Below are positions 19,701-61,734 of a stretch of 64,000 nt of DNA, in pieces. Made by a program: the position numbers and the translations under genes. Location of the stretch: positions 29,326,001-29,390,000 of the forward strand of contig OZ241826.1 in assembly GCA_965202585.1 (NCBI GenBank), written 5' to 3'. The notes beneath the pieces are model-generated. The model had not been told where the DNA came from, made no database searches, and worked only from the letters and a program-made list of their open reading frames with translations. Source of the stretch: Thalia democratica (taxonomy: Eukaryota). Each line of letters starts with the position of its first letter. Positions within the stretch are counted from its first letter, which is position 1.

Positions 19701-20130
19701 AACATAATTAATACTATTATAGTACGGTTATAAACAGTTTACATTTTTTAATAGATAATACAGGAATAAAAAAATTAGAATGTTTTACACGAAAATTAAA
19801 AAGACTTAGATTGAATTGAACTTTGTTCTATAAAAATATATGCTTATAAAATGGAGTTTAAAACAATACTAGAAATAGTTTGATGTAAAGCTTGCTTATT
19901 TGAAAAAGGTATAAACACTTGATGTTTAAAATTTCAACTTTATTTATCATAAAATTTAACAGAATATAAAATATATATAATATATTGAACTTCATCAACG
20001 AGCTACAACTTCAACTTTACAAGATAAAAGCCAAATTAATAAACTCGTTTCACTTATTTATACAGTATATTATACAGTAGATCATCCTAACATTGAGTTA
20101 AAACATAACATAGGGTTTATTGGTTCACAT

Positions 20131-20215
20131 CGCTTCCGTTCATTTTTTCCGTGAGCAAAATGGCAGGCATCTCCAAGTTTAGATGATGGGAAGCTGTGAA
20201 ATGGCATCTAATTAG
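20131..20215 (-). pseudogene. Decayed Tis11/TTP-type CCCH zinc-finger remnant
   Basis: Reads *MPFHSFPSSKLGDACHFAHGKNERK. The paralogue at 48.5 kb supplies SCKFGDAC and HGKNEL. The merged consensus FHSF.SCKFGDACHFAHGKNEL fits C-x8-C-x5-C-x3-H (cf. CKYGDKCQFAHG..ELR). Confidence 0.6.
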
Positions 20216-20527
20216 TACTTTTTTACAGTTAAGGTACTGGCATGTTAAATTCTTATTTGCTCGATATCTAAACCTTATAATAAAGTATTGCTTAAATAAA
20301 ATGCATTTTAGTTGAATGATTTTTTAGACCACTAGTATTAACATAAATATCTTGTTATTTACCATTGTCGTAATTTATACGAATTTGATATATTTATATA
20401 TATATATAGTACTATAAATAATTAAAGTTAAACTACTTATGCGTACTTAAAAAATTAATAAAAAAACAAAAGCAAATTTTTATAGTTTATCTGAATTATT
20501 TCAACGCAAAAACATAAAACGACCTTT

Positions 20528-22388
20528 TTAGTCGCAAACAAACACGTGCCGGCAGTTGGGGCACGTTTTATTTTCTTCGAACCACTTGGTGGCGCATTCG
20601 ATGCAGAAAACGTGTTTCCCGTCACAATCGAGCTCGATCAGCTGCTTGCCGGGTTCGAAATCACTCAGGCATATCGTGCACGCATCGTTTACGTTGGACT
20701 GGTCGGCAGTAAATTTCCTGAACTCATTAACTCTCAAATAGGTTAGACCTGTAAGGAATATTTAATTTTAGAATGTTTTGTATACGTTTTAATTACTTTG
20801 AAGGGTTTGTAGTTTACTTACTTCCGGTATAAAGAACGAGTTCTTAATACAATAACTAGGTATTGGGATAAATTATATCTAGATGAGTTTTTAGGAGAAA
20901 GTTCTGATTTTGAACTAAACTATAATTTTATTGTATTTTATTAGCAAAACAAAGAATTGATTTGTCTCATAAGTTACAGAAAAAAGTAAAGATACATTTA
21001 AAAAATATTTTGTTAAACAAAACCTTGAGGTGGCAGTTCCCACTCGTACATCCCTTGTGCGATGGGATCAAATAATTCATCATCACTGTCGTCATCACTG
21101 TCGTCATCACTGTCAAAAAAGTTATCAAAGGAGTGATCAGCGATGGCATCAGCGAATGTATAACCGTAGTCATCACCGAATTTATAACCGCCGTAGTCAT
21201 CACTGTCGTCATCACTGTAGTCATCACTGTCGTCATCACCGACGTCATCTCCAACGTCGATTGGTTCTTCTTTCTTTTCATTTTCGTTCTGCGTTACATC
21301 AATGATCTCATCGGGTCTTGCATTTCCATTGCTAGACATTCCCTCCTGAAAAATTTCGATATAAAACTTCGTTAAATTTTGTTAGTTCAAAAAATGTATT
21401 GCAGAATATGCCTTAACTTTCATAGTTTTTGGAAAAAGTAATAATTATCTTTTGAGCTTTACCTAAACAAGTAGAAATTATAAACTACAAAAATGCATTA
21501 TAACATTACAACATTATATTATTTGTTTCTAAAATGCTTATTAATAATACTTTACAGCTATTTACTAGCTGGTAAATCTTATATTAAGATATTTTGATGT
21601 GAATTTTCATTTTGGAAATGCAAAAATAGATTAGAAAATTAAAAAGGCACAGTTTGACCTAAGACATAATGTAAAGAAGCTTAAACATTAAACTGATTCT
21701 CAACATTTAAAACTTATGATGTTTTTGGTTTTTGAGCTATTGTACTTTTTAAAATTTTTTAGTACTGCAGCATCAACAGTTTTTAGGGTTTTAAGATAAT
21801 AAGCTTTAGCAATAACAATCATAACTTTAAAAAATATTGTAAAAAAAGTTTAAAATGGAGTAGAAAAAATACAAAAATTTACAATTAAATTTTCAATGCT
21901 AGGTATTAATTTGACTTTACTTAAAAATTACGTTTTGAGATAACTTTTAAAAAATATAAGAAGTAATAATACTTCATTGAAAACAATACAAAAAAGAATA
22001 TTCAACTTAATCTTTGTCAAAAAAATTACAATTAAAACAAAAAAGTGATAAAATTTAGGTACATCAATAAAAATATGTGAAAAATAACATAAAATTTTAG
22101 AGTAATATACAAGTGGGTAAAATAAAGGGTGCACAAACTCTATATTTGAATCTTTTATAGTATAAACTGTTATTGTTAATTAACTATTTTTCTGTTTTGT
22201 TACTACTTTAAACTATATGAATTGTCTTTTGCTTTAATACCATGCTAAAAACTGTTTTCTTATAATTAAAGTTAATCTGTAAATTAAAAAAATAAACAGA
22301 CAATATATACAATAAATATAGAAATAATTAAAAACATTACCTGCACATTATTAGACGCAGAAATATTATTTAAAACCTTTTTGTCCAT
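20528..22388 (-). CDS. Class II SIM-acidic-RING putative E3 ubiquitin ligase, intact, 196 aa
   Basis: Exons 22388-22341 (MDKKVLNNISASNNVQ), 21345-21024 (EGMSSNGNARPDEIIDVTQ..EEPIDVGDD..WELPPQ) and 20748-20528 (GLTYLRVNEFRKF..CTICLSDFEPGKQLIELDCDGKHVFCIECATKWFEENKTCPNCR). 48+322+221=591 nt, open, GT-AG, intron phases 0 and 1 shared with paralogues. Confidence 0.88.
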
Positions 22389-23442
22389 TTTATCTGCAAA
22401 AATACTTTATTTTGTTATCTGCAAAATAACTATACAAAACATTAATCAAGCTTTATAATTTTTGTAAACTAACAAACGTTACAAAAATAGTAAAAGTAAA
22501 TAAACTTTAAATTGCAAAAATGTTTTCTAAAATTTTAAACATGTTGCAAGAATGAATGAAAGCTTTTTTAGGTAAACAAAGTACAAAGTTTACTTGAACT
22601 TATTAAACTACACTAGGTATAGTTAAAAAACTAGTAAATACTAAAGTTTACAGTTTTTTTCGTGATTATTTGAAGTAATACAAACATAACTATTAAAAAA
22701 AATATATACAGTTACAAACTATTAATGTGTTTTCACACCTTACACACCTTTTCAAATACTAATAAAAATTTTGATAGAAAATATTTTTAAATATTACAAT
22801 GATGTCTGTTCAGGTTAAAAAAATAATATTGTTAAATTTATTACATAAATTTATATTAATGTACTAAAATCTATTATTTAATAAATAAATTAATTTAAGC
22901 CTAAACTTTTAATTTTTCTCAAAAAAGTTTAACATCTTATTTATCTAGGACATAATGTGATGGTTTTAGCCCTGATACATCTAAAGTTTCTTAAAAAATC
23001 TATGCATTATTCCACAGCATTCTTTTTCAGTAAGATGCTAAGAATTAAAAAATCAAATTAAATGATCCTATAGATAAGTCACAGTTGAAAAGTTAAACAA
23101 CCATGACTAAATTTTTGTTAGTTTTTTAATTCAAGCTTTATTATTTGAAAACCATTCTGCTTTGAAAGTTTAAGTATTTGTTTTACACTTAAAAATAAAG
23201 TATTTTAATTTTATAAATACAACTAAATTATAAAGTCAGTAAATAAATCTAGTCTGTAAGAAACTTTAAACTAACAATTGTAATGGATGTATGTACCTTT
23301 ATGTTTACAACAAATGATTGAATTAACTTTACTTTAATTAGTTTTAACTGATATTATACATATTAAATATTCAAAACACAATAATCTAAGTATATAAAAT
23401 TGAAAGAAGCTGATCGCGAAAACAAAGCCTTTTCAAACTATC

Positions 23443-23745
23443 TGGATCCGGATCCGGCCTAATTTTAGGAAATTTGGTCTAAATATATATAAAAATTTAT
23501 TAACAAAAAAAATTTAAAAGTTTGAAACAGGTTAAAGCTATTTTTTAACTTTCAAATCCTTACTTACTACTTTTAACAAAATATTAAAATACTAACAATC
23601 TGTTAATAAAATCAACCTTGATCATTTTTAAAATTACTTAAAAAGATCAAAACTATTGATCTACCAGATCTAAAATCCGGATCGGGATCTGGCAATTTTT
23701 TGCTTTGATCCAGATCTGACCGGAACTTAATTTTTGTAAAAGATT
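23443..23745. repeat. GGATCC/CCGGAT-rich interspersed repeat (relatives near 8940, 10523, 33790, 35375, 40235, 43325, 51720-52065)
   Basis: Clusters of ggatccggatccgg / atccggatcgggatctgg / gatccagatctgaccgga recur at these positions. Probably ends of an old DNA-transposon family; boundaries approximate. Confidence 0.45.
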
Positions 23746-24589
23746 CTGATTTGGCCATGTCCTAAATTTACAAAAAGATAAGCTTCTTTCAAATTTATAT
23801 ACTTAGATTATTGTGTTTATAATTTTTGATATAGATAAAATTAGTCAAGCGAGCAATAATAATAAAAGTTTAATTAGTTCAATCATTTGTTGTAAATATT
23901 GTGGTTCATACATCTATTAAAGTAAAATATTGAATTGTTAGTTTAAAGTTGTTTAGTTGCAGATTAGATTCTTTTACTGACTATATAATATGTCTTCTTT
24001 TAAACTCTAAGTATTACATTTTTAAAAGTAAAACATGTATTGAAAATTTAATGTATTTCAACTTATTAAAAGTCATTAAATTTAATTATTAATATGTTGT
24101 TCTTGATTAACAATATTAAATGTTGTAAAAAAATAACAAGTACAGCTCATTTAATTTTTGGTTACTATAACATTAAGAGGCAGCCGTCGTTCAAGAAACT
24201 TTTAAGTTTTCTGGTTTGTCATTAAACAAAATAATTTTTTAGGTTTAGATTAAAAATAGTATAAAGCAGTAAAAAACATTTCTATAAAAAGGTTTAAATA
24301 TTTTTGAAAAACTGTTGCCTCTTAAAGTTATAATAAACAAATATTTTTTACTTTACTTAATATATATATATATATATATAGATTTATTTATTTTACAAAA
24401 AAACAACAACTAATTTTCGCATTGATTACTTAATTTCAACGTTTAAGACGTATCTTTAGAACGAAACAAAGTACATACCAAAAATTTTAAAGAATCACAT
24501 AAAAAAAAAAAAAAAAAATAGTTAGCCTATTTTAAAAACAATTTGTGTACAAGTCAACTTTTTTTTTTCTTTTTTTGTGGTTTTATTTT

Positions 24590-24925
24590 ATTGCTATTTG
24601 TTGTTATTGATTAGTGATTTTTGTTCTTTTAAATCACATGTTTTGATTTTGGAGACAGGGTTGCTGCCTTTTATTTTATGATAATTATTATCTAATTTTT
24701 TCGGTTTCGTACTTTTGTAAACAAGATAAATGGTATGTTCTGTAGTTTTTTGGTTATGTTTTAGTTCTTAAGCTTACTTATGGTTGCTATATCTGTTTTT
24801 AAATGTTGTACTAGTTGAGCCTACGTATAATTTTGTTATATTGTTAGCAGCTCGGTAGATTATATTTTTTGATAGTCAGTTATTTTTTAAAGGGCATTTT
24901 CTTCCTGCAGTGGCTGGTTTTTTCT
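24590..24925 (-). mobile_element. Penelope-like retroelement 3' fragment (GIY-YIG endonuclease), decayed
   Basis: Minus frame reads RKCPLKNN*LSKNIIYRAANNITKLYVGSTSTTFKNRYSNHK*..TTEHTIY..KTCDL..QK.LI. This matches the PLE C-terminal pattern CPL...CL..NI.Y.A..Y.G.T.TTFK.RY.NHK. An A-rich tract follows at about 24560-24590. Confidence 0.75.
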
Positions 24926-24940
24926 TGTTGTTTATATACC

Positions 24941-24964
<24 letters not shown>
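24941..24964. repeat. (TA)12 microsatellite (others near 20390, 24360, 25250-25290, 48770, 52675)
   Basis: Directly visible TA runs. Confidence 0.9.
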
Positions 24965-24973
<9 letters not shown>

Positions 24974-25188
24974 AATGGCGATTTTAAAAATTCTGGAACA
25001 TATGTTTCATGAAGCTTTAATTTTTCATAAAGCTCTAATCATCAGCCAGTTATTTTCAAAATTTTAATTTTGTGATTTTTTTTTTATGATTATGAAAATA
25101 ACTGGCTGATGATTAGAGCTTTATGAAAAATTAAAGCTTTATGAAACATATGTTCCAGAATTTTTTAAAATCGCCATTTTAATAAATT
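24964..25188. repeat. Near-perfect palindrome / foldback element
   Basis: Arms 24964-25058 and 25093-25188 (about 95 bp) are reverse complements with one substitution and one 1-nt indel; 34-bp spacer. Confidence 0.95.
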
Positions 25189-25615
25189 TTTTAAAAGCCC
25201 TTCAAGTGGGCTCAGTTGAAAGTGTTTAAGTTTAAACATTAACCTTATTTTATATATACATATATATATACATATATTATATATATATACATAATTAAAG
25301 TGTTTTCGTAAGGATAGTTTTTGTATGAACAGATTTAAAACGTTTTACTATGCTTAAAAAATTATTCGTTTTTTGTAAAATTAATGCACTTTAATTAATT
25401 ACACATGTTATTTAATCAGTTTGTCTCAACAGATGCTTATAAATGTCAAATTTATTTTGGAAATAATTTTTATGCTGAAACAGCGATAAACGTTTAATTA
25501 GGTGCCTAACAAACAAGTAGGAAAAGTAAGATTTAAAAATGGGGGAAACTTTATTTATATCATTTGGTTGCGGGTTACCATTGTTTTCATAATCATAGTA
25601 AAACGATAATTAAAG

Positions 25616-26095
25616 GCGGCACCATTTCAAACACTAATTAGTGCCAGTCATGTTCAAAGCCTAGCGACTCGTCAAAGAAATCCTGAACTACATCTCATCG
25701 ATGACGTGTGGAAACTGCCATCTCGAGGTTATGTTTTTAAAATCTTTAATTTTAATTGTTTTTTGTTCGTTAATGTGAAGACAAAAAATTTTCGTATTGC
25801 TTATTAAAAAACAATAAAATTCAATTCTAGTTTGAAAAGTGATTTTTTTCTTTTAAATGCTCTTCTAGGTGTAATATATCCCAATATCTAGTCTTTGTAT
25901 TCAGAACTCCTTCTTTAAACCGTAAAAGCTTAAACTACCAAACTCTGACAGGGTAATGTAGGCCGTAAATTCTAAAACTGAATTAAAATCTAATAATTTC
26001 ATACAGGTCTAACAAAGTCGAGAGTGGAAAAGTTCAGGACTTTAACTGCCGACCAGTCGAACTAAAGCAATGCTTGCTCGATATGCATGAGCAAT
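25616..26095 (+). pseudogene. Inverted, truncated RING-family pseudogene (paralogue of 308-790)
   Basis: Exon 25616-25727 (AAPFQTLISASHVQSLATRQRNPELHLIDDVWKLPSRG). Exon from 26007 reads LTKSRVEKFRTLTADQSN*SNACSICMSN (TAA 26063-26065), then RING homology stops. Confidence 0.85.
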
Positions 26096-28039
26096 AAACT
26101 GGTTAGCTATATTAAGCTGATAGATTACCACTTATTACGTGTAGCCTAGTGTTAACATTCTAGAATTTACAAAATTATCCGGATCTACTTAGGTTTTAAG
26201 AAAATTGTTTTTTACAAACAGCTTCTTTCAGCTTTATACAATTACATTGTTGTGTTTATAATATTTTATATGCATAAAATTAGTCAAGCAAAACAGACTT
26301 AAAAAAATTAGTTAGTTCGATCATTTGGTATAAACATATAGGTACATTTATTAATTAAAGTAAAAATAGCGGATTGTTAGTTTCAAGTTTCTTGCAGATT
26401 ACAATTTGCTACTGACTTTATAATTTATCTTTTATATATTTACTTAAAATATTTTCTTATTTTATTATCAAACATGTGTTTAAATTTCAATTTATTTCAA
26501 TTTTCTTAAAATTCTTTACAGTTTTAATTTAACTATTTTGTTCTCATTCAGATATATTAAATAATTTAAAAACTCTACAAGTACAGCTCATTAAATATAT
26601 GGTTAGTATTACATTAAGAGGCAGCGATTGTTCTACAAACTTTTTTATTATTTTGTTTGTCATCTTAGAAAATGTTTCACTTTTTACAATTTCTGATTTA
26701 GATGAAAAATAGTATACTGTAGTATAAAATATTTCTGTGAAAAGTTTAAATGTTGTTAAACTTATGCTGCCTTTTAAACTTATGGTAACCTAATATTTTA
26801 AATACTATATTTAATATATATACTTATAAATAAAGTGTTTTCGCAACGATAGTTTTTGTATTAAACAAGAATGGCAGCCACAAACTCAATACATTAGAGG
26901 GGGTCATTGCTTTTTGAATTTTTTAAAAGCAGTGCTTATAAAAAAGTTTAGAAACCTTTGCTAAATTCTTTGTTATTTATTTCTATATTAAGTTGTGTTA
27001 TTAACGTCTATTATTTTTATTGTTGTTCTCTTTAACTTTTCTTAGCAGCTTTTGTTTATCTTGTTGATCTAAAAGTAACTTAAATCAAATAACTTAAAAT
27101 TACTTTTTTATTTTACAGATTAAACATATATTTAATAAATAATAATCAATCTATCAATCACTTTTAAGCCGTTCGGACACATAAAAAACCTTTTTTTATA
27201 TTACAAAACGTAGTCACTAAAGCAAACTTAAAATAAAAGCAAATTAAAACGATTAAGAAAATAGCTTAACAGTTTTATTAAACATCCTTTGTTTCTGAAA
27301 AATTTCTTTTTAATCAAAACAATTGATTTTGTACACCGAAATGACAAAACTATTAATATTTTATTAGTTTTAAGCTTAAAACACATTTAAACAAACAAAT
27401 AAAGTTTAAATTGGTTGTGACTTAACTTTTAAATCGATGATGTTTAGGTAAATAGTGATTTATTAAGTTACGAAATCATATATACTTGAGCGAGTTTTAA
27501 ATTTTATTTAAGTTATTTGAAGCATTTTATTTAAAAGTTTTTTCATTTAAAATTGCAAAACATTTTTATGAATATGATAATTTTAAGGCGAAGTTTAAAC
27601 AAATTAAACTTAGTTCTTGTCTTTGCAGTCGTAGAATCAATATTGTAAAAAAAACAAACATTATTCATTGCTTTGTTTATATATAGTACTTAACAACTTA
27701 TTAGTGTAAATGACAATGATACATCAACTGTTTTCTATTAGCTAATGAATTACGCTTGTTTTTAATAGTTTTTTTTTTCTTCGACATCATGACCTACTAA
27801 CAAAGTTGTACAAAACATTACTGTTTAGTAACTTATTTGATCATGACTTTTAAGATCAGTTTGTTACCATTCTTAGATTGTAGTTACGTTTCGTTTCTGT
27901 TTTCATATAATTAAATGACTCTAAATACTTGACAACTGTTAAATCTGCACTAATTTTGAAAACTTTGAAAACTTTGTAAAAAAACACAATCTTCCAATTG
28001 AGCTGGTTTATTACTATACAAAATCAGAAAACGACCCTT

Positions 28040-30842
28040 TTACTCGCAAACAAACACATGCCTACAGTTGGGGCACGTGTTGTGTTTTTCGAACCACTTG
28101 GTGGCGCATTTGGTGCAGAAAACGTGTTTCCCGCCACAATCGAGCTCGATCAGCTGCTTACCGGGTTCAAAATCACTCATGCATATCGTGCACGCATCGT
28201 TTACATTGGACTGGCTGGCCGTGAATTTCCTGAACTTTTCCATTCTCGACTTTGTCAGACCTGTACAGATTATTTAATTTTAGAATTTTTTATATTCGTT
28301 TAAATTACTTTGTTAAGGGTTGGTAGTTTGCGACTTTCCGGTGTAAAGAAAGAGTTCTTAAAATAAAATATAGATATCACCATAAATTAAGTCTAGGTTA
28401 ATATTTAAAAGGAAAATTCATATATTAAATGAGTTAGAAGTCTTTTTGGTTTTAAATAAACAATACAAAAATAATGAAAAATTACTTTAATGATTTTTAC
28501 ATTAACTAAAAAAAGTTTCTTTCTAACAAAACCTTGAGATGGCAGTTCCCAGACGTCATCGTTGACATCAAACATCAACTCTTCATCACCGACGTTATTA
28601 AACAAGTAATCACCAAAGTCATCACCGACGTCATTAAAGAAGTCATCACTGACGTCATCACCGACGTCTTCAAAGAAGTCGTCACCGACGTCTTCACCGA
28701 CGTCTTCAAAGAAGTGATTACCGAAGTCAACACCGAAGTCATAAAAGAAGTTATTACCAACGTCATCAAAGAAGTCATCAGCGACGTCATCACTGACATC
28801 ATTACCGACGTCATTACTAGCACCATTATGATAATGGTTAATGTTAACAGTATGTTGTAAGTTAGAGACTTGGCTACTACCGACTTCATCGTAAATGTTG
28901 ATATTCACATCAAGTTGTGCATCCGGGCTACTTTGATAAACCACTTGGCTTTGAACGTAACCGGTATTCATTTGAGTTTGAAGTGGTGATGCCTGTGTGA
29001 AATTGTTTAAAAAACAAAGAAAAAAATACTTAAATTATCGTTATATGATGTATATAAAAAAAATTGTAACCTTTTACTTAATACATTTCTTAAATTAAAA
29101 GTATAATATTTGAAGCGTGTAGTCCATTGTAGTTTGCAAATGATGTTTGTAAACCCAACTGTAAAAAAAATGAAAATGCATGGTAACATTTATACTTGTA
29201 TTAAAAATAAAAACTAAAGGTTTGTTTAATGTTAATGGACTACACGACATTTTACATAATCAAGTTTTTAAAATTTTGATAATGAATAATGAAAACAAAT
29301 AACAAAATTAATTGGCATTATAATTATTTTCCTATGTAAATTACAGCTTATATTCTATGTTAAACATTTTTTTTACTAAAATCACAGTTAACTTGTTAAA
29401 TAAGTTCTTTACTAGTTCTGAAACGCTGGACTTTGCTAGGTTTTGTCTTAGCTTGCCAAAGGTCTAATTGTATCTAAACTTGAAATTTTGACTTCAATCA
29501 GGCTCAGATTATACTGATTTAAAAAATTGGTAATAGCCAATTCTGGTTTATTTTAAATTTTTAATAGAAATTTGAATCGAACCAATCATACCTATAAACT
29601 ATCCTAACCGTTAACTTGTTTTAGGTCCAACTAGAACGAGCTACGACCATTTTTCAACAAAAAAATCAAATCCTGACCTGAACCAATTTTTCAAATAATA
29701 TCTAGTTGGATCTTGTTTTTTGCAAGGGTCAGATCTTGTGTTAGAACATTAATTAAAACTATTTTAGTTTGGTAAACTTGCTAAATTAAATGTAACTAGT
29801 TAAAATATTAAAAAATGTAGAAGTTATGCCTTTATTATAAACATTTTAAAGTGTTTTATGGAATTCTAAAATTTTTAGTAGAAGCTATGGATATTTAATG
29901 GTAACAAAATAATAGTATATCTTTAATTTTAGTCAGTTTTTTACTTTCAACGTTTGGATTAAACTCTTAAGTTCTTAAAGTTTAAATAAACTTTCATAAT
30001 AATTAGTGAGGTTTTTAGAAATTTAGGTAAAATAAGTCTTCTTTAAAATTTAATAAACTGCATTTCATATTAAGAGGTTTAAGAACTGTTTTTAAAACAA
30101 CTTGTAAACAGGGTTGCCAAATGTTTTCGGTAAATTTTTTCCAGGTTTTCAAAGTTTCTTCAAGGTTAAAAGTACACATTTTTAAATATATTAAAGTCTA
30201 TATTTATGTATTAGGTAAAAAACTGTGATGAACAGTATATAAACATTAAAACAAGATACTCTAAAGCTACTTTAAATGTGTTTTTTAATTAAAACATTTT
30301 GATAATGACACATTTATTTGTCTTCTTGATAGATTTTTTGAGTCAAATCAGAGTTTTTATACTAAACATGTTTAAATTATTAAAAATTCAAAAATTTTCG
30401 AGTCGTTTTTAGTTATTTTTTGTTTAGAATTCTAGGTTTTTCAGTTTTTTTTTTCAATTTTTTTAAACTCTAGGCTTTTCCAGGTTTTTTAGCCTAAATT
30501 TTCAAATTTTAGACTTTTCTAGGTGCTTCCAAGTTTCAAGGTTTGTTAGCAAGCTGGTAAAAGATTTAAAGTCTTTATCTGAAATTACAAAAATATAAGA
30601 TTTAATTTCAGCAAATTTGTAAAACTTTAAGAAAATTTACTAAAAAAATTGTGGGTTATACAAAAGTTTTTACAAACTTAGTCTTTGTCAGAAATAATAC
30701 ATTTATATAAACTAGTGTTGAAATTTGCACGAATTAGAAAAAAAAACAACAAAATGTTATAGAAATATACGAAAGAAAAGAAGCTGAACGTTACCTGAAC
30801 ATTACTAGACAGAGAAAAATTATCAGAATTTATTTCATCCAT
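28040..30842 (-). CDS. Class I acidic-repeat RING putative E3 ubiquitin ligase, copy B, intact, 242 aa
   Basis: Exons 30842-30795 (MDEINSDNFSLSSNVQ), 28992-28533 (ASPLQTQMNTGY..DDFFEDV repeats..DDVWELPSQ) and 28260-28040 (GLTKSRMEKFRKF..CTICMSDFEPGKQLIELDCGGKHVFCTKCATKWFEKHNTCPNCR). 48+460+221=729 nt, open. Confidence 0.88.
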
Positions 30843-33800
30843 TTTATCTAATAAATCTGTAAAATAACTTAACAAATTATTTCTCAAGCTACATAATAAT
30901 TGTAAACTATTAAACTTTTAAAATTGTAGTAAAAGAAATATCTACTTAAAATTGCAAAGATTATTTGTGTTTTTTTTTTTTGAATGTTTAGCAGGGATGA
31001 ATGTAAGCTTTTTTGGGAGGACTAGCACAGAATTTACTTGAATTGTTAAACTACATTTGGTACAGTTTAAAAAACATGTTATAAAACTAAATTAGTACAT
31101 GCTAAACTAAATAATTTTTTGCTGTCTTTATTTATAGTAATATAAATGTGACTCACTATTGAAAAAAGTATATATTCTCACAAACTAGCATAATATTAAG
31201 TAAACCTCTTTGAAATACCATATTTTTGAGTAACTTTTGTTCAGTTCACATATAATTAATCACATAGTTATATTTATAATATTTTATATACATTTCTGAA
31301 CTATTATTCGATAAAAATTGTGTTTGTTTTAGAATTGTTCAGTTAATAAATAAATCTGAGCTTAAAGTTTTAACTTTAGCTAAGCAAATATAATTCTATG
31401 TAGGAAAAATGTGATGGTTTTATCCCTGATAATTCTAAAGTATCTTTCAAAAACTATGCATCATTAGATAGCATTCAATTATAGCAGGGACGTAGCTAGC
31501 TCAATAAAGTTACGAATCTCCAAAAATTGAAACATCTGAAATAACTCGTGATATAGTCCTAGCGGGAACACAGTAATTTAAACTATCTCTAATATTATTG
31601 AATTTTATCTAAAAAAATGTAGTTATGTTAATACATCAAAAATGGAATGTTGAGGTACGAGTGATAACTGTATACAAGGCAATTTAATTTGCTCCACAGC
31701 CCCTTTGACTCTTTATGTCTTGCCACTTGTGTAAACCAAAAAACATTTATTAATTGGTAGGAATTTTAATAGGTAGTTTTAAATATTGGGTATTTTCAAT
31801 TGCAGCAAATTTGCGAAAAAAAAGTACCAAATATTTTGATGACTTCATTAACTTTACTTTGGGTAGTTTTGAAGCTTAGACGTGTAAAAAAAAACAAAGT
31901 TGCTGTCCAAGCCTATGACAAATTCACCTTTTTTAATTTTCTAAAATATGAAAATAATCATATCTGAAATAAAACAATAGAATAATACTAAACATTTCCC
32001 TATATTAACAAAATTATAGAAATATTTTTTATTAACATAAAGTTACAATCTTAAATTCAAACATAAATTAAAAAAAAAAACATTTTTTAAAATTTTTCTT
32101 TTATAGTTTATTGATGAATTTAAATTCATAAAAAATTTTGAACTAATTATACATGAGTAATGTACTTCAATAAAAGCTACCTTTTTATAGTTTAAAATAA
32201 AGTTAACAGGGTGGCCATCAAACCTAAATGCTTATGGGAATCTTGGAATGTTGTATAAAATCTTAGAATCACTTGAAATTCTGATCACTTATTTTGTCTA
32301 GAAAAGTAAATAAGACTTAAATTTAAAAAAATTTATTAAATTTTGAAAAATTGAAAGAAGTTTTAAAAAAACTTCAGGGGCCACCTTGGGTACAGGGAGA
32401 GTGTAGATCACTTTTATTACAAATTGATGTCACTTCATAAAATTTAATCTAAACTACAAGTATCTTTATACAGATTTTTATACCAAAACAAATTTTTGAT
32501 ATAAAACATTAAAATAGGAGAGTACAGTAGGTTTTAATTGTCATCTTTTGCTATTTTTTAAACATTGAAAGGAATACTTCCTTAAAATTTGAGCAGGGTT
32601 GCCAAAACACCTGGAATCCAGGAACTTGACAGTTTAAACACAAACTGGAAAAACCTTGAACTTTGGAAATTAAAAAATTTGAATATATATAGTGTTTAAT
32701 AAAAAAAATCATCAAAAAATCTGTAATTTTTAAACTACTTCTACATGTAAAATAATGAGTTTTTTATAAAGTATGATAACTTAAAGTCATTAAAATCTAT
32801 AAAAGAAAAATTTTCAAAGTCAATAGCTTAATTTGTGGTTGAATTAATTTAAAATTGTAACTCACACATAAAATATCAAGGTTGAAAATTATATTTCCTT
32901 AATTTTGTTAACATAGTGAAATGTTTAGTATTGTTTTATTTCAGATATAATTATTTTTATATTTAGAAAAATAAACAAAGTGAATTTATCATAGTCCTAG
33001 ACAGCAAATTTATTTTTTTTACAAAGTTTAACCTTAATAACTGTAATAACTACCCAAAGTAAAGTTAATGACATCATCAAAATATTAGGTTTTTTTTTTG
33101 CAAAATTGAGGCAATTAAAAGTACCCAATAATTAAAACTACCCATAAAAAGTTGAAAAGTCCTACTCTTCATTAGAAATAAGTATAAAAAATCAGCATTT
33201 AACTCAAAAACACTTATACTGTTTTCAAAATCAAACATTTAGCGTAGTCAATAGTAACAAAAAAATATGCAAATTTTTGTAACATAAAATTGTATGATTT
33301 TGATTTTTGAAGCTACAGCTTCCTTTAGAATCAATTTTGTATTCCATTTTTTGACAAAATAAAGCTTCAACGCCCTAAATGTTACAATCTGGATGTATTT
33401 AATTAATTCAATTTTTTTACGACACTAAAAATGCTAAAGAGTACATATATGACAAAATTATCTCTCAGGAGTGCAAAATTAAGCATAAATGAATACTAAA
33501 AGCTTAGACAGCAGAGTCTTTTCAAGCTGTAATAAAAGCAAGTTTTTTCGCCCATAAGTATACGTTTCTGTAGATTTGCAGCACCTACCAAGATACGTCC
33601 ATGAATTAAAGTAAAAAGCTAAAATTAAAATAAATGTTAAGTTGTTCCTATTAAAAACAGTCACATTTAAATAGTTTAATAACCATGATTAGCTACTAGT
33701 TGGATTTCCTATTTTAAGCAACATTTTTTCAAAACCAATTTATCTTTAGTCAACAACACAAAAATCTATATATTTAGTGATCTACTGTATCCGGATAAGA

Positions 33801-38582: not shown

Positions 38583-40003
38583 TTAGTCGCTAACAAACAC
38601 GTGTTGGCAGTTGGGGCATGTGTTGTGTTCTTTGAATCATTTGGTGGCGCATTCGGTGCAGAAAACGTGTTTCCCGCCATAATCGAGCTCGATCAGGTTG
38701 TTGCCCGGTTCGAAATCACTCATACATATTGTGCACGTATCGCTTACGTTCGACTGGTCGGCAGTGAATTTCCTGAACTTTTCTACTCTCGACTTTGTCA
38801 GACCTGTACAGATTTTTTAGTTTAAAAATTTTTTGGGTACGTTAAAATTACTCTATTTAGGGTTGGTAGTTTACGATTTTTTGGTGTAAAGAAAAAGTTT
38901 TAATACAAAATCTAAATGTTTGGCACAAATTAAATCTACGTAAATACTTGAAAGAAAAACTCATGATTTTAACTAAGTTAGAAGTCTTTAGTCTTTTTAG
39001 TAAGCAATACGAAGATAACAAAAAATAATTTTTATGTTCTTTACATTTACAGAAAAAAATTACAAAAAAAAGAGAGTCCTTTGTAAAACAAAACCTTTAG
39101 ATGGCAGTTCCCATACGTCATCGTTGGGATCGAATAATAATTCATCATCACTATCGTCATCAAAGAAGTCATCAATGAAGTCATCACTGACGTATTCACC
39201 GACGTCATTACTAACGTTATCACCGACGACATCACCGACGTCATTACTAACGTCATTACTGACGTCATCACGAACGTCATTATGATAATGGTTAACGTTA
39301 ATAGTAAGTTGTATGTTAGGGACCTGACTATCACTGACGTTATCGTAAGTGTTAATATTGGCATCAAATTGCCCACCTTGGCTACTTTGACTAACCACTT
39401 GGCTTCGAACGTGACCGGCACTCACTGGAGTTTGATGTGGTGCTGCCTGTATTCAATTTTTTTGATGAGTTTAAAAAACTGTTAATTCACAACCAAATGA
39501 TTTAAAATGTGTTAGTCCTATTTTTAAACCTTACTGTGTTTTTTTATTTTTTAGCCACCCAATTCAACGTTTATCTTTATCTAAGCCCAAAAATTTCTCT
39601 AAAATAAAGTCAATACTATTTATATGCATCTATTGAGACTAAATAGCTGAAAAATTCGTGTAATTAAGTAAAAAAAGTTTATGTTACTGTAGTTTTAATC
39701 GTTATAAACTAAAAAAAACAGTTAAGATTAATATACAAAAACCGAAACACTTTTTTAGTTAAGTAAAGCTTCCTTAATTTTTTCAAAACTTCTTTATTTA
39801 TTGTTTAAATACTTCTATAAAAAAAATCGAAATAGCCTTTTATTGGAAACCACGCTGGAAGTTCCTTTTACTTAATATATTTTATAAATAAAAAGTACTT
39901 ACATGTATTTTACAATTACTAACAAGTACTTACACAATTTCAAACTTACATAATTTTGAGCTTGTTGTCCATTGTAGTTTGCAAATGGTGTTTGTAAACC
40001 CGG
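38583..40003 (-). pseudogene. Class I RING pseudogene, copy Z
   Basis: Exons 40003-39950 (PGLQTPFANYNGQQAQNY, phase 0/0), 39446-39095 (AAPHQTPVSAGHV..DDVWELPSK) and 38803-38583. The RING has Cys3->Tyr (TAT 38681-38679), Trp->TGA (38639-38637) and linchpin R->Q. No 16-codon first exon was found upstream. Confidence 0.88.
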
Positions 40004-40353
40004 CTGTAAAAAGTTAAAAATGCATGATGAATATTTTACTTCGATTATAAACAAAAACTATCTTAATGTCAAAACATAACTCAAGTTATTAAAAATATGA
40101 TGATAAATTAGGAAAACATTAAATAAAATTGCTTGGAACTTTATAAATTTCCACTTTTATATTACAGCATGTATTCAATGATAAACTTATATTTTACCAA
40201 AACTACGATTAGTTTATTAATCTGGTTTTTTACCAGATCCGATACTCTGACGGATCTGGCCTTGGCTTGACAAAGATGCAATTGTATTTAAACTTGAAAA
40301 ACTGATTTAAACCCAGTTCCGACTATAATGATCAAAAAAAAACTGGTACTAGC

Positions 40354-43141: not shown

Positions 43142-44483
43142 GTACTAGCCAATTCTGGTTTGACCTAAATTTGTGACAAAAATTCTGATCCAACTAATCA
43201 TATTTGAAAGCTATCTCAACGAATTATCTTGTTTTGGGTCAAACACTCAAACTACAACAAGCTACGACCATTTGAAAAAAAAATTAAATCCTGATCTGAA
43301 TCTAATTTTTCTTTAGTGTGTAGTTGGATCCGGATTTGGGCAAGCTATTGTTAGATCTATCGCTTAGATCCGTCAACCACTAATTACAACTTTTTTAATG
43401 TAAAAAACTAGTTAATTTAAATTAAACTAACTAAAATTATAAAAATGTAAATGTTATGCCTTTACTATAATTTATTTAATTTTTTTTATGAACTTTCTGA
43501 ATTTTTAATAAAAAATAAGCATATTTGAATATTCTTTTAATTTTAGTCGTTTTTTACTCTTTTACGATAGTTAAACTTTTATTTTCTTAAGTTCATATAA
43601 ACTTTCCTTAATATTGAAGAGGATTTTAGAAACTTAGGTATAATAAGTCTAATAAAAAAAAAAGCATTTAATATTTAGAGTTTGAAAAACTGTTTTTCAT
43701 ACTACTTATATACAGAGTTGAAAAAGATTTTTGCCAAATTATTTCCGAGTTTTCCTCCAGGTTTTTTAAAAGTACACATTTTTTGGTCTATATTTAGTTT
43801 AAAGTTAAGTTAAGGTAAGAAACTGTGTTAAATAGTTTATATAATATTAAAAAGATACTCTAAAGCTACTTTAGCTGTGTTTTTTTAAACTTTATAAATA
43901 TTTAAAATAGATTTTGTGAGTCAAATCGAAATTTACACACTAAACATGTTAAAATTGTTAAAAATTCCAGGCTTTTCCAGGTTTTTTAGCCTAAATAGTC
44001 AAATTTAAGGTTTTATCAAGGTTTTAAGGTTTCTTGGCAGCCTGTATATAAATTAAAAGTGTGTATCTCAAAATACAAAAATAATTGACAATGTTTATAA
44101 TAAAATAATATAAATAAATACTCAATAATCTTTGATTAACATTTAGCAAACTTGTAAATTTAAAAAAATATATGATTGAAAAAATACGACCTATACAAAA
44201 GTTTTAACAAAACTTATGTCTCAAAAGTGATATGTATCACTTCCAAATAAAAATAAAACGACATGTAGTCTGTAAAGTGATTTTTTTTAGGAGTCCTTGC
44301 TCGTGCGACAAAATACTTAGTGCTAATACATTCAATTACTTTTATAAATAAATGTTTTATGTTCATAAATGTTTCTCACTTGAAACTTTTGAGTTATCAA
44401 AACTTAATAAACTAATGCTACATTTATAAGAAGGACTAGTATTTAGACAGTTTTTAATAAAAATTAACAAATATATAAGTTAC

Positions 44484-47400
44484 CTGAAAAATTCTTGGTT
44501 GGCTAGTATAAGCAACAGGGTAAGGATAAACCAAAGGATTATAACCAAAAGAATTCAAAAGTGCCCTAATGTAATTGTCTTGAGCAGTATAGTATGCTAG
44601 TGCTGCATTGTGCATATTTTAAGCAAAATAATTTGTAGGTGGTCGAAACCTGATGTTTTGAATATAAATATTAGAAGGTGCTCCAATGTTATTGTTTTGA
44701 GCATAAGTATTAGAAGGTGCTCCAATGTTATTGTTTTGAACATAAATATTAGAAGGTGCTCCAATGTTTTTGTTTTGAGCATAAATATTAGAAGGTGCTC
44801 CAATGTTATTGCTTTGAGCATAAATATTAGAAGGTGCTCCTATGTTATTGTTTTGAGCAGAAGAATTAGAATGTGCTCCAATGTTATTGCTTTGAGCATA
44901 AATATTAGAAGATGCTCGAATGTTATTGCTTTGAGCATTAATATTAGAAGGTGCTCCAATGTTATTGTTTTGAGCATAAATATTAGAAGGTGCTCCAATG
45001 TTATTGTTTTGAGCATAAATATTAGAAGATGCTCCAATGTTATTGTTTTGAGCAGAACAATAAGAAGGTGCTCCAATGTTATTGTTTTGAGCATAAGTAT
45101 TAGAAGGTGCTCCAATGTTATTGTTTTGAGCATAAATATTAGAAGATGCTCCAATGTTATTGTTTTGAGCATAAATATTGGAAGATGTTCCAATGTTATT
45201 GTTTTGAGCATAAATATTAGAAGGTGCTCCAATGTTATTGTTTTGAGCATAATTATTAGAAGATGATCCAATGTTATTGTTTTGAGCAGAAGAATAAGAA
45301 GGTGCTCCAATGTTATTGTTTTGAACATAAAAATTAGAATGTGTTCCAATGTTATTGTTTTGAGCAGAAGAATTAGAATGTGCTCCAATGTTATTGTTTT
45401 GAGCATAAATATTAGAAGATGCTCCAATGTTATTGTTTTGAGCATAAATATTAGAAGATGCTCCAATGTTATTGTTTTGAGCATAAATATTAGAAGGTGC
45501 TCCAATGTTATTGTTTTGAGCATAAATATTAGAAGATGCTCCAATGTTATTGTTTTGAACATACGAATTAGGATGTGCTCCAATGTTATTGCTTTGAACA
45601 TAAGAATTAGAATGTGCTCCAATGTTTTTAGGTTGAGCATAAATATTATAAGATGCTCCAATGTTATTGTTTTGAGCATAAATATTAGAAGATGATCCAA
45701 TGTTATTGTTTTGAGCATAAATATTAGAAGATGCTCCAATGTTATTGTTTTGAGCATAAATATTAGAAGGTGCTCCAATGTTATTGTTTTGAGCATAAAT
45801 ATTAGAAGGTGCTCCAATGTTATTGCTTTGAGCATAAATATTGGAAGATGCTCCAATGTTATTGTTTTGAGCATAAATATTAGAAGGTGCTCCAATGTTA
45901 TTGTTTTGAGCATAAATATTAGAAGGTGCTCCAATGTTATTGTTTTGAGCATAAATATTGGAAGATGCTCCAATGTTATTGTTTTGAGCATAAATATTAG
46001 AAGATGCTCCGATGTTATTGTTTTGAGCAGAAGAATTAGAAGGTGCTCCAATGTTATTGTTTTGAGCATAAATATTAGAATATGCTCCAATGTTATTGTT
46101 TTGAGCAGAAGAATAAGAAGGTGCTCCAATGTTATTATTTTGAGCATAAATATTAGAAGGTGCTCCAATGTTATTGTTTTGAGCATAAATATTAGAAAGT
46201 GCTCCAATATTACTGTTTTGAGCATAAATATTAGAAGGTGCTCCAATGTTATTGGTTTGAGCATAAATATTAGAAGATACTCCAATGTTATTGTTTTTAG
46301 CATAAATATTAGAAGATGCTCCAATGTTATTGTTTTGAGCATAAATATTAGAAGGTGCTCCAATGTTATTGTTTTGAGCAGAAGAATAAGAAGGTGCTCC
46401 AATGTTATTGTTTTGAACATAAATATTAGAAGGTGCTCCAATGTTATTGTTTTGAACATAAATATTAGAAGGTGCTCCAATGTTATTGGTTTGAGCATAA
46501 ATATTAGAAGATGCTCCAATGTTATTGTTTTGAGCATAAATATTAGAAGATGCTCCAATGTTATTGTTTTGAGCATAAATATTGGAAGATGTTCCAATGT
46601 TATTGTTTTCAGCATAAATATTAGAAGGTGCTCAAATGTTATTGCTTTGAGCATAAATATTGGAAGATGCTCCAATGCTATTGTTTTGAGCATAAATATT
46701 AGAAGGTGCTCCAATGTTATTGTTTTGAACATAAATATTAGAAGGTGCTCAAATGTTATTGCTTTGAGCATAAATATTGGAAGATGCTCCAATGTTATTG
46801 TTTTGAGCATAAATATTAGAAGGTGCTCCAATGTTATTGTTTTGAACATAAATATTAGAAGGTGCTCCAATGTTATTGTTTTGAGCATAAATATTGGAAG
46901 ATGCTCCAATGTTATTGTTTTGAGCATAAATATTAGAAGGTGCTCCAATGTTATTGTTTTGAGCATAAATATTAGAAGGTGCTCCAATGTTATTGTTTTG
47001 AGCATAAATATTAGAAGATGCTCCAATGTTTTTGTTTTGAGCATAAATATTGGAAGATGTTCCAATGTTATTGTTTTCAGCATAAATATTAGAAGGTGCT
47101 CCAATGTTATTGCTTTGAGCATAAATATTAGAAGATGCTCCAATGTTATTGTTTTGAGCATAAATATTAGAAGGTGCTCCAATGTTATTGTTTTGAGCAT
47201 AAATATTAGAAGATGCTCCAATGTTATTGTTTTGAGCATAAATTTTAGAAGATGCTCCAATGTTATTGTTTTGAGCATAAATATTGGAAGATGTTCCAAT
47301 GTTATTGTTTTGAGCATAAATATTAGAAGATGCTCCAATGTTATTGTTTTTAGCATAAATATTGGAAGATGTTCCAATGTTATTGTTTTGAGCATAAATA

Positions 47401-47963
47401 TTAGAAGGTGCTCCAATGTTATTGTTTTGAGCATAAATATTAGAAGATGCTCCAATGTTATTGTTTTGAGCAGAAGAATAAGAAGGTGCTCCAATGTTAT
47501 TGTTTTTAGCAGAAGAGCTAATAGGTGCAGCAAAATTATTATTTTGGGCAAAATAGTTAGAAGCTCCCATGTTACTGAATTAACTTAAAGAGTAAGTAGG
47601 TGATCTTGTGTTACTGTTTTGACTAAAAGAGTAAATAGGTGCTCCTGTTTTATTGTTTTGAGCAGAAATTTCAGCAGGTCTTCTAGTAGGGTTGTTATGA
47701 GTAGAAAGATCAAGAGGTGTACTAAAAAAAATTTCATTTCAAAGAGTGAAATTATTATTCGCTGTAGTATTAGTTGTTGGATATGCTCCAGAAGTTTGAA
47801 CACTTGAAACAGAAGTTGAACTAGGAAAACCTTCAGCATTGAACCTATCACTCTCACCATTAGACTGTGTCAAGTCAATTGTTTCTTCTTCTTTTTGCTT
47901 TTTGTTCTGGGTCAAATCAATGATCTCACCAACTCTCGTGTTTCCATTTCTGGACGTTTCCTC
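44484..47963 (-). pseudogene. Giant 1160-codon exon: two SIMs plus about 80 x 13-aa N/S/A-rich repeats, interrupted by five stops
   Basis: Acceptor ttccag|GAGGAAACG is homologous to the class II exon-2 acceptor. One frame runs EETSRNGNTRVGEIIDLTQ..ETIDLTQ.., then (NNNIGA[P/S]SNIYAQ)n, then ..YTSQPRIFQ|gtaact. 3480 nt with no frameshift. Stops at 47741, 47582, 46751, 46634 and 44621. Confidence 0.75.
44560..47760. repeat. 39-bp minisatellite, about 73 regular plus about 8 degenerate flanking units
   Basis: Consensus (+) aatgttattgttttgagcataaatattagaagg/atgctcc. Unit length is preserved throughout; counts are estimated from span/39. Confidence 0.97.
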
Positions 47964-48519
47964 CTGGAAAAAAATATTTAAAACTTGATAATTTTTTTTT
48001 AATTCAGATTAAAATTTACTGCAAAATTTTCTATGACTTATATGGTTAGTTATATTAAGTAACCTTTTTTTTCATACGTTTTTTACTGTTAGGTAAAATA
48101 GGAAAAAGTTTTTAGTATGCAAAAATATTCTTTATATTATTTGTTTCTAACTTATTAATCAAAAGTTCAGCGTGATATTTTCTTAGTGTCATAAGGGGTG
48201 CGGAACAAGATTAACTTAAATGTTGTCTTTTTTATGCTAGCCTGAGCTAAAATTTAATGATAAAACTTTTTAGAAATTAAAACTACCTTGGTCTAAAGCA
48301 GTTTATGTTGCCTTTTGGTGTTTAAAATTTCTACTTCATTTATCACAAAATTTAACAGAATGTAAATTCATTGAACTTTATCAACGAGCAACAAGTTCAA
48401 CTTTACAAGATAAAAGCCAAAACTCGTTGGTTTATTATTTATACAGTATATTATAAACTAGACCATCCTAACATCGAGTTAAAACATAACATAGGGTTTA
48501 TTGGTTCACATCGTGTTTA

Positions 48520-48592
48520 GTTACAGCTCATTTTTTCCGTTAGCAGGCATCTCCAAATTTGCATGATAGGAAGCTGTGAAATGGTATCTAAT
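48520..48592 (-). pseudogene. Decayed Tis11/TTP-type CCCH remnant (paralogue of 20131-20215)
   Basis: Reads PFHSFLSCKFGDAC, then a deletion of about 10 nt, then (H)GKNEL. Confidence 0.55.
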
Positions 48593-48900
48593 TAATACTT
48601 TTTCACTGTTAAGGTACCGGCATGTTATATTTTTATTTGTTCGGTATCTAAACCTTATAACAAAATATTGTTAAAATTAAATAGCTTTTTAGTTCAATGA
48701 TTTTTTAGCCAATACTAATAACATAAATTTCTTGTTTTTTACCATTGTCGTATTTATACAAATTCGATATATATATATATATTATTTTAAATAACTAAAG
48801 TTAAACTACTTATGCGTACTTTAAAAACTAGTAAAAAAATAAAATCAAAATTTTATAATTTATCTGAATTATTTCAACACAAAAACAGAAAACGACCTTT

Positions 48901-50662
48901 TTAGTCGCAAACAAACACGTGTTTGCAGTTTGGGGCACGTGTTGTGATCTTCAAACCACTTGGTGGCACATTCAGTGCAGAAAACGTGCTTCCCGTCACA
49001 ATCGAGCTCGATCAGCTGCTTGCCGGGTTCGAAATCACTCTGGCATATCGTGCACGCATCGTTTACGTTCGACTTGTCGGCAGTGAATTTCCTGAACTTT
49101 TCCACTCTCGAATTTGTTAGACCTGTACGGAATATTTAATTTTAGAATGTTTTGTATACGTTTTAATTACTTTAAAGGGTTGGTAGCTTATTTTTTTCCG
49201 GTTTAAAGAACGAGTTAACTAGGTATTGGGATAATATTACATCTTGATGAGTGTTTAGAAGAAAATTATGATTTTGAACTAAATCATAATTTTATTGTAT
49301 TTTAAAAGCTTAACGAAGATTTGATTTGTCTTAAAAGTTACAAAAAAAAGTAAATAGATATTTTTAAAATGAATTTGTCAAACAAAACCTTGAGGTGGCA
49401 GTTCCCAATCGTCACTGTCGTCATCATTTTTGTCATCACTGTCAAAGAAGGAACCGTAAAAATCAATGACGCCATAACCGAAGAAATCAATGACGTCATT
49501 TTCGACGTCATCACAGACGTCATCACCGACGTCGATTGGTTCTTCTTTCTTTTCATTTTCGTTCTGCGTTACGTCAATGATCTCATCGGCTCTTGCATTT
49601 TCATTGATTGACGTTTCCTCCTGAAAAATTTTAATTGAAAACTTGTTAAAAATTTTATTAGTTCAAAAAATGTATTGCAGAATGTCCCTTAACTTTTATA
49701 GTTAGTGGAAAAAGTAATAATTATCTTTTATGAGCTTTATCAAAACAAGTAAAAATTATAAAGTACCGAAATGCACTATAACATTACAACATTATATTAG
49801 TTGTTTCTAAAATGCTTATTAGTAATACTTTACAGTTGTTTAAAAACTGGTATATTAAAACTAAAGATATTTTTATATAAATTTTCATATTGAAAATGCA
49901 AAAATAATTTTAGGAAATTAAAAAGGCACAGTTTGACCTAAAACATAATGTAAAGCAACTACATAGACTTAATTTAACAAAACTGCTTCTCATCATTTAA
50001 AACTTATGATGTTTTTGGTTTTTGAGCTATTGTACTTTGTATAATTATTAGTACTGCAGCATCAACAGTTTTTAGGGCTTAAAGATAATCAGCTTTAGCA
50101 ATAACAATCATAAATAAAAATAACTTATCAAGTGTAAAATTGATAGGAAAAATACAAAAATTTTACAATTAATTTTTTAATGCTAGATTTTAATTTGAAT
50201 TTACTTACAAATTACGTTTTAAAGTTTTACTAACAAAAAAAAATTAAAAACATATAAGAAATAATAATAGTTCATTAAAAACAATACAAAAAAGAATACT
50301 AAACTTACTCTTTGTCAAAAAAATTATATTTTAAATGAATAAGTGTTGAAATTAATGTACTCCAATTAACTACAAAAAAAATCTTTAAAATTTTAGAGTA
50401 ATATACAAGTGGGTAAAACAAAGGAATAGTATTAGCTGTTATTGTTAATTAACTTCTTTTTTTTCGTTTCGTTGCTACTTTCAACTTTATGAATTGTCTT
50501 TTGCTATAATACCATGCTAAAAACTGTTTTTTTTATAATTAAAGTTAACCTGTAAAAAAAGAAAAATTACAGACAACATATTTAATATATAAAGAAGATA
50601 ATTAAAAACATTACCTGCACATTATTATGCGTAGAAATATTATTTAAAACCTTTTTATCCAT
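48901..50662 (-). pseudogene. Class II SIM-acidic-RING gene, copy b, with a +1 frameshift before the last Cys (or an assembly indel)
   Basis: Exons 50662-50615 (MDKKVLNNISTHNNVQ), 49620-49389 (EETSINENARADEIIDVTQ..EPIDV..WELPPQ) and 49122-48901 (222 nt versus 221 in paralogues). An extra T at 48929-48931 turns CPNCK into CPKLQTR. Confidence 0.8.
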
Positions 50663-61700: not shown

Positions 61701-61734
61701 ACCTAATTACCTAAATACTATAGCGATTTCATAA

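Follow-up and report, generated by a model that had tools for sequence, protein, structure and literature searches.

SUMO-targeted ubiquitin ligases (STUbLs) are few and low in copy number in the organisms studied so far. In RNF4, the second and third SUMO-interacting motifs (SIM2 and SIM3, both VDLT and of type b) are together required for di-SUMO binding and suffice for it, with a spacing that matters (PMC3901395), and a preprint describes Arkadia as a SIM-bearing STUbL (bioRxiv 10.1101/2021.06.17.448718). In this study, we analyzed a 64,000-nucleotide stretch of Thalia democratica DNA (contig OZ241826.1, positions 29,326,001 to 29,390,000), hereafter the window, which carries a cluster of small RING genes whose class II members place a tandem pair of SIM-like motifs ahead of a C-terminal RING. 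Our results support well the view of this cluster as a tandem, lineage-specific birth-and-death family of small RING E3 ubiquitin ligases of the RLIM/ARK2C/Arkadia type. A STUbL-like function, limited to class II, is proposed tentatively and falls a little short of being probable.

A tandem cluster of three-exon RING genes

The window is AT-rich (24-30% GC) and free of N runs, and its genes have short GT..AG introns. A six-frame motif scan, tblastn searches with exon peptides and a five-way DNA alignment revealed a minus-strand array of seven copies or fragments of one RING gene family, whose genes have three exons: exon 0 of 16 codons, exon 1 of variable, low-complexity sequence, and exon 2, which is conserved and encodes the RING. 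Every full-length copy lies on that strand, and one truncated fragment lies on the plus strand.

2736-5985, minus strand: copy c3k, class I; stop at codon 21, RING intact
20528-22388, minus strand: copy c20k, class II; intact, 196 amino acids
25390-26095, plus strand, with a twin at 81-787: inverted fragment, truncated and with a stop
28040-30842, minus strand: copy c28k, class I; intact, 242 amino acids
38586-39446, minus strand: copy c39k, class I; stop, one zinc ligand lost, linchpin Arg lost
44621-47963, minus strand: the 47.9-kb copy (p47k), class II-like; four in-frame stops, no RING
48869-50662, minus strand: copy c49k, class II; frameshift in the RING
2736-2956, 20528-20748, 28040-28260, 38586-38803 and 48869-49122, minus strand: RING exons

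The region 20528-50662 is bounded by the stop codon of c20k (20528) and by the ATG of c49k exon 0 (50662). Self-BLAST pairs positions 1-11762 with 25309-36616 as 94% copies and positions 19919-24589 with 48315-52927 as 80% copies. The first pair, an 11.7-kb segmental duplication, contains a class I gene together with its exon 0 and the inverted truncated gene fragment; c3k, outside the region 20528-50662, is the class I twin of c28k. An initial annotation of this DNA had claimed a tandem expansion with rapid turnover: the 94% duplication and the seven copies or fragments bear out the expansion, and the damage found in five of the seven, leaving only c20k (class II) and c28k (class I) fully intact, agrees with the turnover. 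Near-identical DNA is present in organism sequencing runs as well as in several marine metagenomes. Reads of the DNA runs X1-X3 over 19600-25500 cover introns and intergenic DNA evenly, and, for reads of >=90% likeness, the summed depth of the RING-exon bin is ~5-6x that of its flanks, a value that is not a copy count and that hints at more family copies elsewhere in the genome.

The gene structure and the state of each copy are established by this analysis. Alignment of the regions upstream of c20k, c49k, c28k and c3k uncovered a conserved 48-nt exon 0 (ATG..CAG/GTAA) common to both classes. Its translation is MDKKVLNNISASNNVQ in class II genes and MDEINSDNFSLSSNVQ in class I genes, and it lies upstream of exon 1, at a distance of ~1 kb in class II and ~1.8 kb in class I. 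The exons of the four copies are as follows.

22341-22388, minus strand: c20k exon 0, encoding MDKKVLNNISASNNVQ; donor CAG/GTAATG; located by alignment and pattern search
21024-21345, minus strand: c20k exon 1 (class II), after the acceptor TTTTTCAG; SIM-like pair and acidic/aromatic tract; ends WELPPQ-G/GT
20528-20748, minus strand: c20k exon 2; GLT helix and RING, stop codon included
30795-30842, minus strand: c28k exon 0, encoding MDEINSDNFSLSSNVQ
28533-28992, minus strand: c28k exon 1 (class I), without SIM-like motif; long DDVG/DDFF acidic-aromatic repeat tract
28040-28260, minus strand: c28k exon 2, RING intact; spliced product of 242 amino acids through GT..AG introns
5938-5985, 3228-3747 and 2736-2956, minus strand: c3k exons 0, 1 and 2 (class I)
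50615-50662, 49389-49620 and from 49122, minus strand: c49k exons 0, 1 (with DEIIDVTQ..EEPIDV) and 2 (class II)

Joined through canonical GT..AG introns, the c20k segments 22388-22341, 21345-21024 and 20748-20528 give exactly the spliced 196-amino-acid protein announced by the initial annotation. The acceptor of class II exon 1 (TTTTTCAG) recurs, followed by GAGGAAAC, in p47k, c49k and the metagenome homologue L002. The absence of an ATG from exon 1 of c49k, c39k and p47k was considered as a loss of the start and rejected; once exon 0 is taken into account, the ATG in c20k exon 1 is internal. In c20k and c49k, a (DDxx)n acidic tract comes after the SIM-like pair; 12-nt repeats encode it, and they are found in tandem at 21080-21114 and 21196-21249 of c20k exon 1. 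Built from coding micro- and minisatellites, exon 1 changes in steps of whole repeat units. A few bases 5' of the exon 0 ATG, acceptor-like sequences (TTTTGCAG, TTTTTGCAG) occur in both classes, at 22389-22440, 50663-50710 and 30843-30860; they could belong to an intron of the 5' untranslated region or to a trans-splice acceptor.

The damaged copies differ in the nature of their lesions. In c3k, CAA has become TAA at 3733-3735, codon 21 of the three-exon frame. Compared with c28k, its exon 2 is 92.3% identical and its intron 94.8%, and exon 1 shows 11 nonsynonymous changes, the stop among them, against 4 synonymous changes, as well as an indel of 20 residues that affects repeat units; these roughly neutral differences fit a dead c3k. 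In c39k, Tyr replaces the Cys that forms the third RING ligand (38681), a stop codon stands in place of the helix Trp (38639) and Gln in place of the linchpin Arg; a pattern search of the window found no exon 0 for this copy. In c49k, the run that starts at 48935 is one A too long, which causes a +1 frameshift before the last Cys pair of the RING. In the rearranged inverted fragment at 25390-26095, a 5' region, the last part of exon 1 and the intron are present, as are 29 codons from the start of the RING exon, together with a stop.

The p47k exon begins after the acceptor TTTTTCCAG and encodes EETSRNGNTRVGEIIDLTQNKKQKEEETIDLTQ, with its motif pair in frame with about 73-80 units (73 by Tandem Repeats Finder) of the 13-residue Asn-rich repeat NNNIGA(P/S)SNIYAQ; the underlying 39-nt minisatellite at 44654-47511 has 73 units, 91% matches and no indels. 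On either strand, this minisatellite can be read without stops in several frames, giving open reading frames (ORFs) of up to 903 amino acids. Because of its four in-frame stops (47741, 47582, 46751 and 46634) and because it has neither an exon 0 nor a RING of its own, p47k, which bears the "canonical" motifs, is a pseudogene; an acidic tract of its own is also absent from it. A chimeric working gene made of the p47k exon and the c39k RING was rejected in view of the four stops, a fifth one at 44621 before the candidate donor at 44486, and the broken RING of c39k. The end of the p47k repeat exon was also tested as a homologue of class I exon 0 and is not homologous to it.

The RING module and its relatives

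The RING type and the constraint on its sequence are likewise established here. The RINGs of c20k, c28k and c3k have the spacing C-x2-C-x14-C-x3-H-x2-C-x2-C-x11-C-x2-C with all eight zinc ligands, the fifth ligand being Cys and two residues being inserted between ligands 3 and 4 (before the His). Pfam zf-RING_2 matches the two intact copies at 51.1 and 53.6 bits, with E values of 1.6e-13 (c20k) and 2.6e-14 for a gathering cut-off of 27.3. A single-sequence search of the PDB with the RING returned RLIM first (4e-9), then RNF24, ARK2C/RNF165 and RNF38, single RNF4 RINGs appearing at ~4e-4. Run against the PDB, a family profile built from 43 sequences gave ARK2C at 4e-13, RLIM at 5e-12, Arkadia at 2e-11 and RNF4 at 5e-8. 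The AlphaFold2 model of c20k exon 2 has a predicted local distance difference test score of 90, and its best Foldseek match is the RLIM RING with E2 (template modeling [TM] score of 0.88-0.92, root mean square deviation of 1.2 A over 71 residues), followed by RMR1, RNF13, RNF38 and ARK2C. Because of these profile scores and Foldseek ranks, the module is typed, by profile and predicted fold, as the helix plus monomeric-type RING of the RLIM/RNF38/Arkadia group, distinct from the RNF4 RING; a kinship with RNF4 is not supported, RNF4 scoring far lower on both counts.

In RING domains, the residues contacting E2 are the hydrophobic one (psi) of C-x-psi-C, the helix Trp and the Pro after ligand 7, and the linchpin Arg follows ligand 8. 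Aligned to RLIM, c20k, c28k and c3k keep the contact residues I (C-x-I-C), W and P (C-P) as well as the linchpin R (C-R). With no zinc ligand, E2-contact residue or linchpin Arg lost, the intact copies c20k and c28k are most likely active E3 ligases. They are presumed to be expressed. The ratio of nonsynonymous to synonymous substitutions (dN/dS) of the RING exon is 0.19-0.41 in all pairs, and between the two classes exon 2 is 87% identical versus 68% for the intron, with a synonymous and intron divergence of ~0.35-0.4. These values argue that the RING is under long-term purifying selection.

A phmmer search of 1.84 billion representatives returned 186 proteins below 1e-10. Most members of this family (P0002-P0186) have 100-230 amino acids and share the 70-residue C-terminal module with 45-59% identity, a 4-5-residue tail and the consensus GLTxxRIxKF...C-x2-C...LDCDGxHxFC...WFxxHxTCPxCRHxF. 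All are unnamed proteins of ENA or JGI marine metagenome assemblies, Tara Oceans included; cluster look-ups and a word-indexed search yielded no named homologue of the family, only one unrelated plant multi-RING protein, in keeping with the lineage specificity proposed initially. Their N-termini are mostly K/E/Q-rich and coiled-coil-like, a few being acidic-aromatic as in class I (P0012 and P0031). A phylogenetic tree built on the RING module groups the window copies in one clade (99/98), which is nested in a six-member clade with P0017, P0002 and P0005 (99/95), P0017 sitting on a long branch. P0017 (L002) is also the only relative with an EIIDL core, directly after the same acceptor (CAG/GAGGAAAC..EIIDL). 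In the Tara/ENA homologues L001 (210-707) and L002 (187-561), the acceptor before the main exon is kept and no intron precedes the RING part; therefore, not every family member has an intron ahead of its RING exon. A scan of JGI metagenomes for closer relatives gave only RINGs of <=49% identity, a search with P0017 found only P0017 itself, and an Atlas search with the RING returned generic RING clusters only. One family member, P0051 (JGI, 743 amino acids), is fused in frame behind a complete glycoside hydrolase family 1 domain on a 2.4-kb contig, which is either a chimeric assembly or a read-through.

The SIM-like motif pair of class II

The motifs lie on the minus strand where the initial annotation had placed them: DEIIDVTQ..EEPIDV spans 21306-21253 in c20k and occupies the equivalent place in c49k, and GEIIDLTQ..ETIDLTQ is found at 47924-47865 in p47k. 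The cores of the two motifs start 15 residues apart in class II.

21292-21306, minus strand: SIM-like motif 1, IIDVT (c20k residues 30-34); fits the psi-psi-x-psi core, with V where strict SIMb needs L
21253-21264, minus strand: SIM-like motif 2, PIDV followed by GDDVGDDDSDD; close to SIMa, whose first acidic position is taken by G here

The claim that class II combines SIM-like motifs with a C-terminal RING survives in part. It holds for c20k, the one gene with a working frame in the window to do so; c49k carries the same combination with a frameshift in the RING, and p47k has no RING. SIMa, SIMb and SIMr were taken as the published PROSITE-style patterns (PMC3395311), and strict SIMb was matched solely by the IIDLT of p47k, so that the strict SIM expected in an intact gene is confined to a dead copy. 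The IIDV of c20k fits the looser psi-psi-x-psi core flanked by acidic residues. A motif of the form [IVL][IVL]D[IVL]T arose in 7e-4 of composition-preserving shuffles of the N-terminal part of c20k and has two further occurrences in the whole six-frame translation of the window; on this ground, its presence by chance appears unlikely. The acidic tract after motif 2 is rich in S-D-D and looks like CK2-type sites.

Between c20k and c49k, the 24 codons of DEIIDVTQNENEKKEEPIDVGDDV, a block picked after the alignment had been viewed, differ by 3 synonymous changes and no nonsynonymous one, whereas the 16 codons that flank it differ by 8 nonsynonymous changes and 1 synonymous one (Fisher p = 1.7e-4). 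Compared with the much more diverged p47k, the residues EIID-psi-TQN and EE-x-ID-psi are retained. As judged from these comparisons, no other part of class II exon 1 is as conserved as the SIM block, which is also the sole part under clear constraint. Class II exon 1 has no homologue among 5.8 billion proteins, neither SIM region matched the PDB with E up to 10, and exon 1 gave no useful match in the ESM Atlas and has no Pfam family.

Altogether, SUMO binding by class II only is a plausible and reasonable reading of these sequences. For c20k, we propose an RNF4-like mechanism as the most likely one: its motif pair and acidic tract would bind one SUMO, or two neighboring ones, carried by a modified substrate, which would then be ubiquitinated by a charged E2 that the RING brings in. 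Several observations weigh against such a STUbL-like role of class II, besides the choice of the 24-codon block after the fact. The IIDVT and PIDV-GDD of c20k miss strict SIMa, SIMb and SIMr and are near-matches, as is the TIDLT of p47k. Among the three SIM-bearing copies of the window, c20k is the only intact gene. The class I copies c3k, c28k and c39k have no SIM-like motif, and strict SIMb occurs in 0 of 175 relatives (those of <=300 amino acids), so that the SIM plus RING architecture is not the family trait it had been taken for. The linker is strongly acidic (52 D+E versus 14 K+R). RNF4 reaches 35-36 profile bits (35.8) versus 52 for ARK2C, and its dimer ranks only 47th in Foldseek (E 0.028, TM score of 0.57). 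Finally, all the sequencing runs found are of DNA, and no GT..AG splice joint was seen in their reads.

As a first alternative, the family could be a generic, lineage-specific one of small RING E3 ligases in which the variable exon 1 serves to recruit substrates that have nothing to do with SUMO. IID(V/L)T would then be a conserved short linear motif for another partner (e.g., another ubiquitin-like fold or any partner bound by beta-strand addition), or the acidic tract would be the real binding element, e.g., for basic proteins. We consider this a serious though rather doubtful possibility. The RING module is indeed common to ~175 relatives with coiled-coil-like or acidic N-termini and no SIMb, class I shares this RING and the acidic tract but lacks the motif, and c20k, whose exon 1 has no detectable homologue or family, misses the strict patterns. 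Nevertheless, it is a specific combination to find psi-psi-D-psi-T next to acidic residues, in tandem and with RNF4-like spacing, in a low-complexity N-terminus that precedes a C-terminal RING; moreover, the SIM block is under purifying selection, and no result points to an alternative partner.

A more ambitious form of the STUbL-like reading would be an independent mini-STUbL family built on an RLIM/Arkadia-type RING, diversified in tandem arrays in which satellite modules (13-amino-acid Asn-rich and 4-amino-acid acidic) are swapped and resized between the SIM pair and the RING to give a rapidly evolving set of poly-SUMO readers of varied reach, possibly driven by SUMO-dependent viruses or transposons; we regard it as unlikely. 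For the genetic conflict suggested in the initial annotation, gene turnover is the sole pointer, and no result supports the germline or antiviral functions suggested with it; the dN/dS of the RING exon (0.2-0.4) is not above 1. Last, it is very unlikely that the whole cluster is a non-functional, decaying gene-derived tandem array of which the two open copies are merely the youngest: the disabling lesions in five of seven copies or fragments, c3k/c28k differences like those of neutral DNA (11 vs 4 in exon 1; 92.3% in exon 2 vs 94.8% in the intron) and runs that are all of DNA, without splice joints, would agree with it, but c20k and c28k are open across three exons with canonical splice sites, the eight zinc ligands and E2-contact residues are retained, RING dN/dS between classes is 0.2-0.4 against a synonymous/intron divergence of ~0.35-0.4, and the changes in the SIM block are all synonymous.

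If c20k binds SUMO, as we propose for class II, the RNF4 design (a type-b SIM tandem and a C-terminal RING in <200 residues) would have arisen convergently on another RING lineage, and the cluster would offer a natural series of spacer variants to study SIM-to-RING geometry and substrate choice, as well as the first functional handle on a large RING family whose known members are all unnamed proteins from marine metagenomes. If it does not, the cluster would represent one more lineage-specific RING expansion with many dead copies, as is common in invertebrate genomes.

Other features of the window and comparison with known ligases

Outside the gene family, Rfam and tRNA scans of the window gave no matches. 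The other features recorded are listed below; the foldback is a very high-copy element, because its depth is ~500x that of the flanking DNA.

24973-25180: near-perfect foldback resembling the hairpin of a miniature inverted-repeat transposable element, arms beginning AAATGGCGATTTTAAAAATTCTGGAACATATG; summed depth in the DNA runs ~500x that of the flanks
16325-16723, minus strand: isolated 132-amino-acid ORF between gene copies, without Pfam match
52921-63995: several families of diverged direct repeats (70-78% identity) with units ~2.7 kb apart (52941-56087 vs 55675-58863); no ORF of >=90 amino acids

Among known proteins, those of the marine-metagenome RING family resemble the window genes in their 70-residue C-terminal module, their length range and, in L001 and L002, the acceptor before the main exon. 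They differ in their N-termini, which are mostly K/E/Q-rich and in only a few cases acidic-aromatic.

RLIM is a RING-H2 protein with a long basic N-terminal region, and we know of no SIM role for it. Its RING (RLIM/RNF12) aligns with that of the family from the GLT helix to the last Cys, with matching E2-contact residues and linchpin Arg. The identity is only ~27%, and the N-terminal parts have no similarity.

With Arkadia/RNF111 and its paralogue ARK2C/RNF165, the family shares a C-terminal RING preceded by a helix and CTICLS at the first Cys pair. ARK2C is the best profile match (4e-13), ahead of Arkadia (2e-11); RLIM (5e-12) scores almost as well and is the best structural match, so profile and predicted fold suggest no specific kinship with Arkadia. 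Unlike in Arkadia, the fifth metal ligand of the family is Cys and not His, and there is the two-residue insertion between ligands 3 and 4. Arkadia is a multidomain protein of ~990 amino acids with three SIMs in its middle, whereas c20k (196 amino acids) and c28k (242 amino acids) have low-complexity sequence alone before the RING.

The vertebrate STUbL RNF4 (190 amino acids) is like c20k in its small size and in its short disordered N-terminus with tandem psi-psi-D-psi-T motifs, followed by a linker and a RING at the extreme C-terminus. The pairs IIDLT..TIDLT of p47k and IIDVT..PIDV of c20k correspond to the VDLT pair of RNF4, and both RINGs have H-V-F-C-x-x-C at ligands 4 to 6. Unlike RNF4, the family RING has the N-terminal GLT helix of the RLIM/RNF38/Arkadia type and a 6-7-residue tail after the last Cys; the RNF4 RING is a RING-HC that forms dimers, has a long first loop and ends in an aromatic tail, a type to which the family RING does not belong by profile and predicted fold. 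Two motifs are present in c20k versus four in RNF4. The linker of RNF4 holds a basic stretch, whereas that of class II is acidic, built of repeats and without a basic motif. This gene stands outside the RNF4 family, and if its motifs work, the SIM-pair architecture of c20k would be convergent with that of RNF4 and not inherited.

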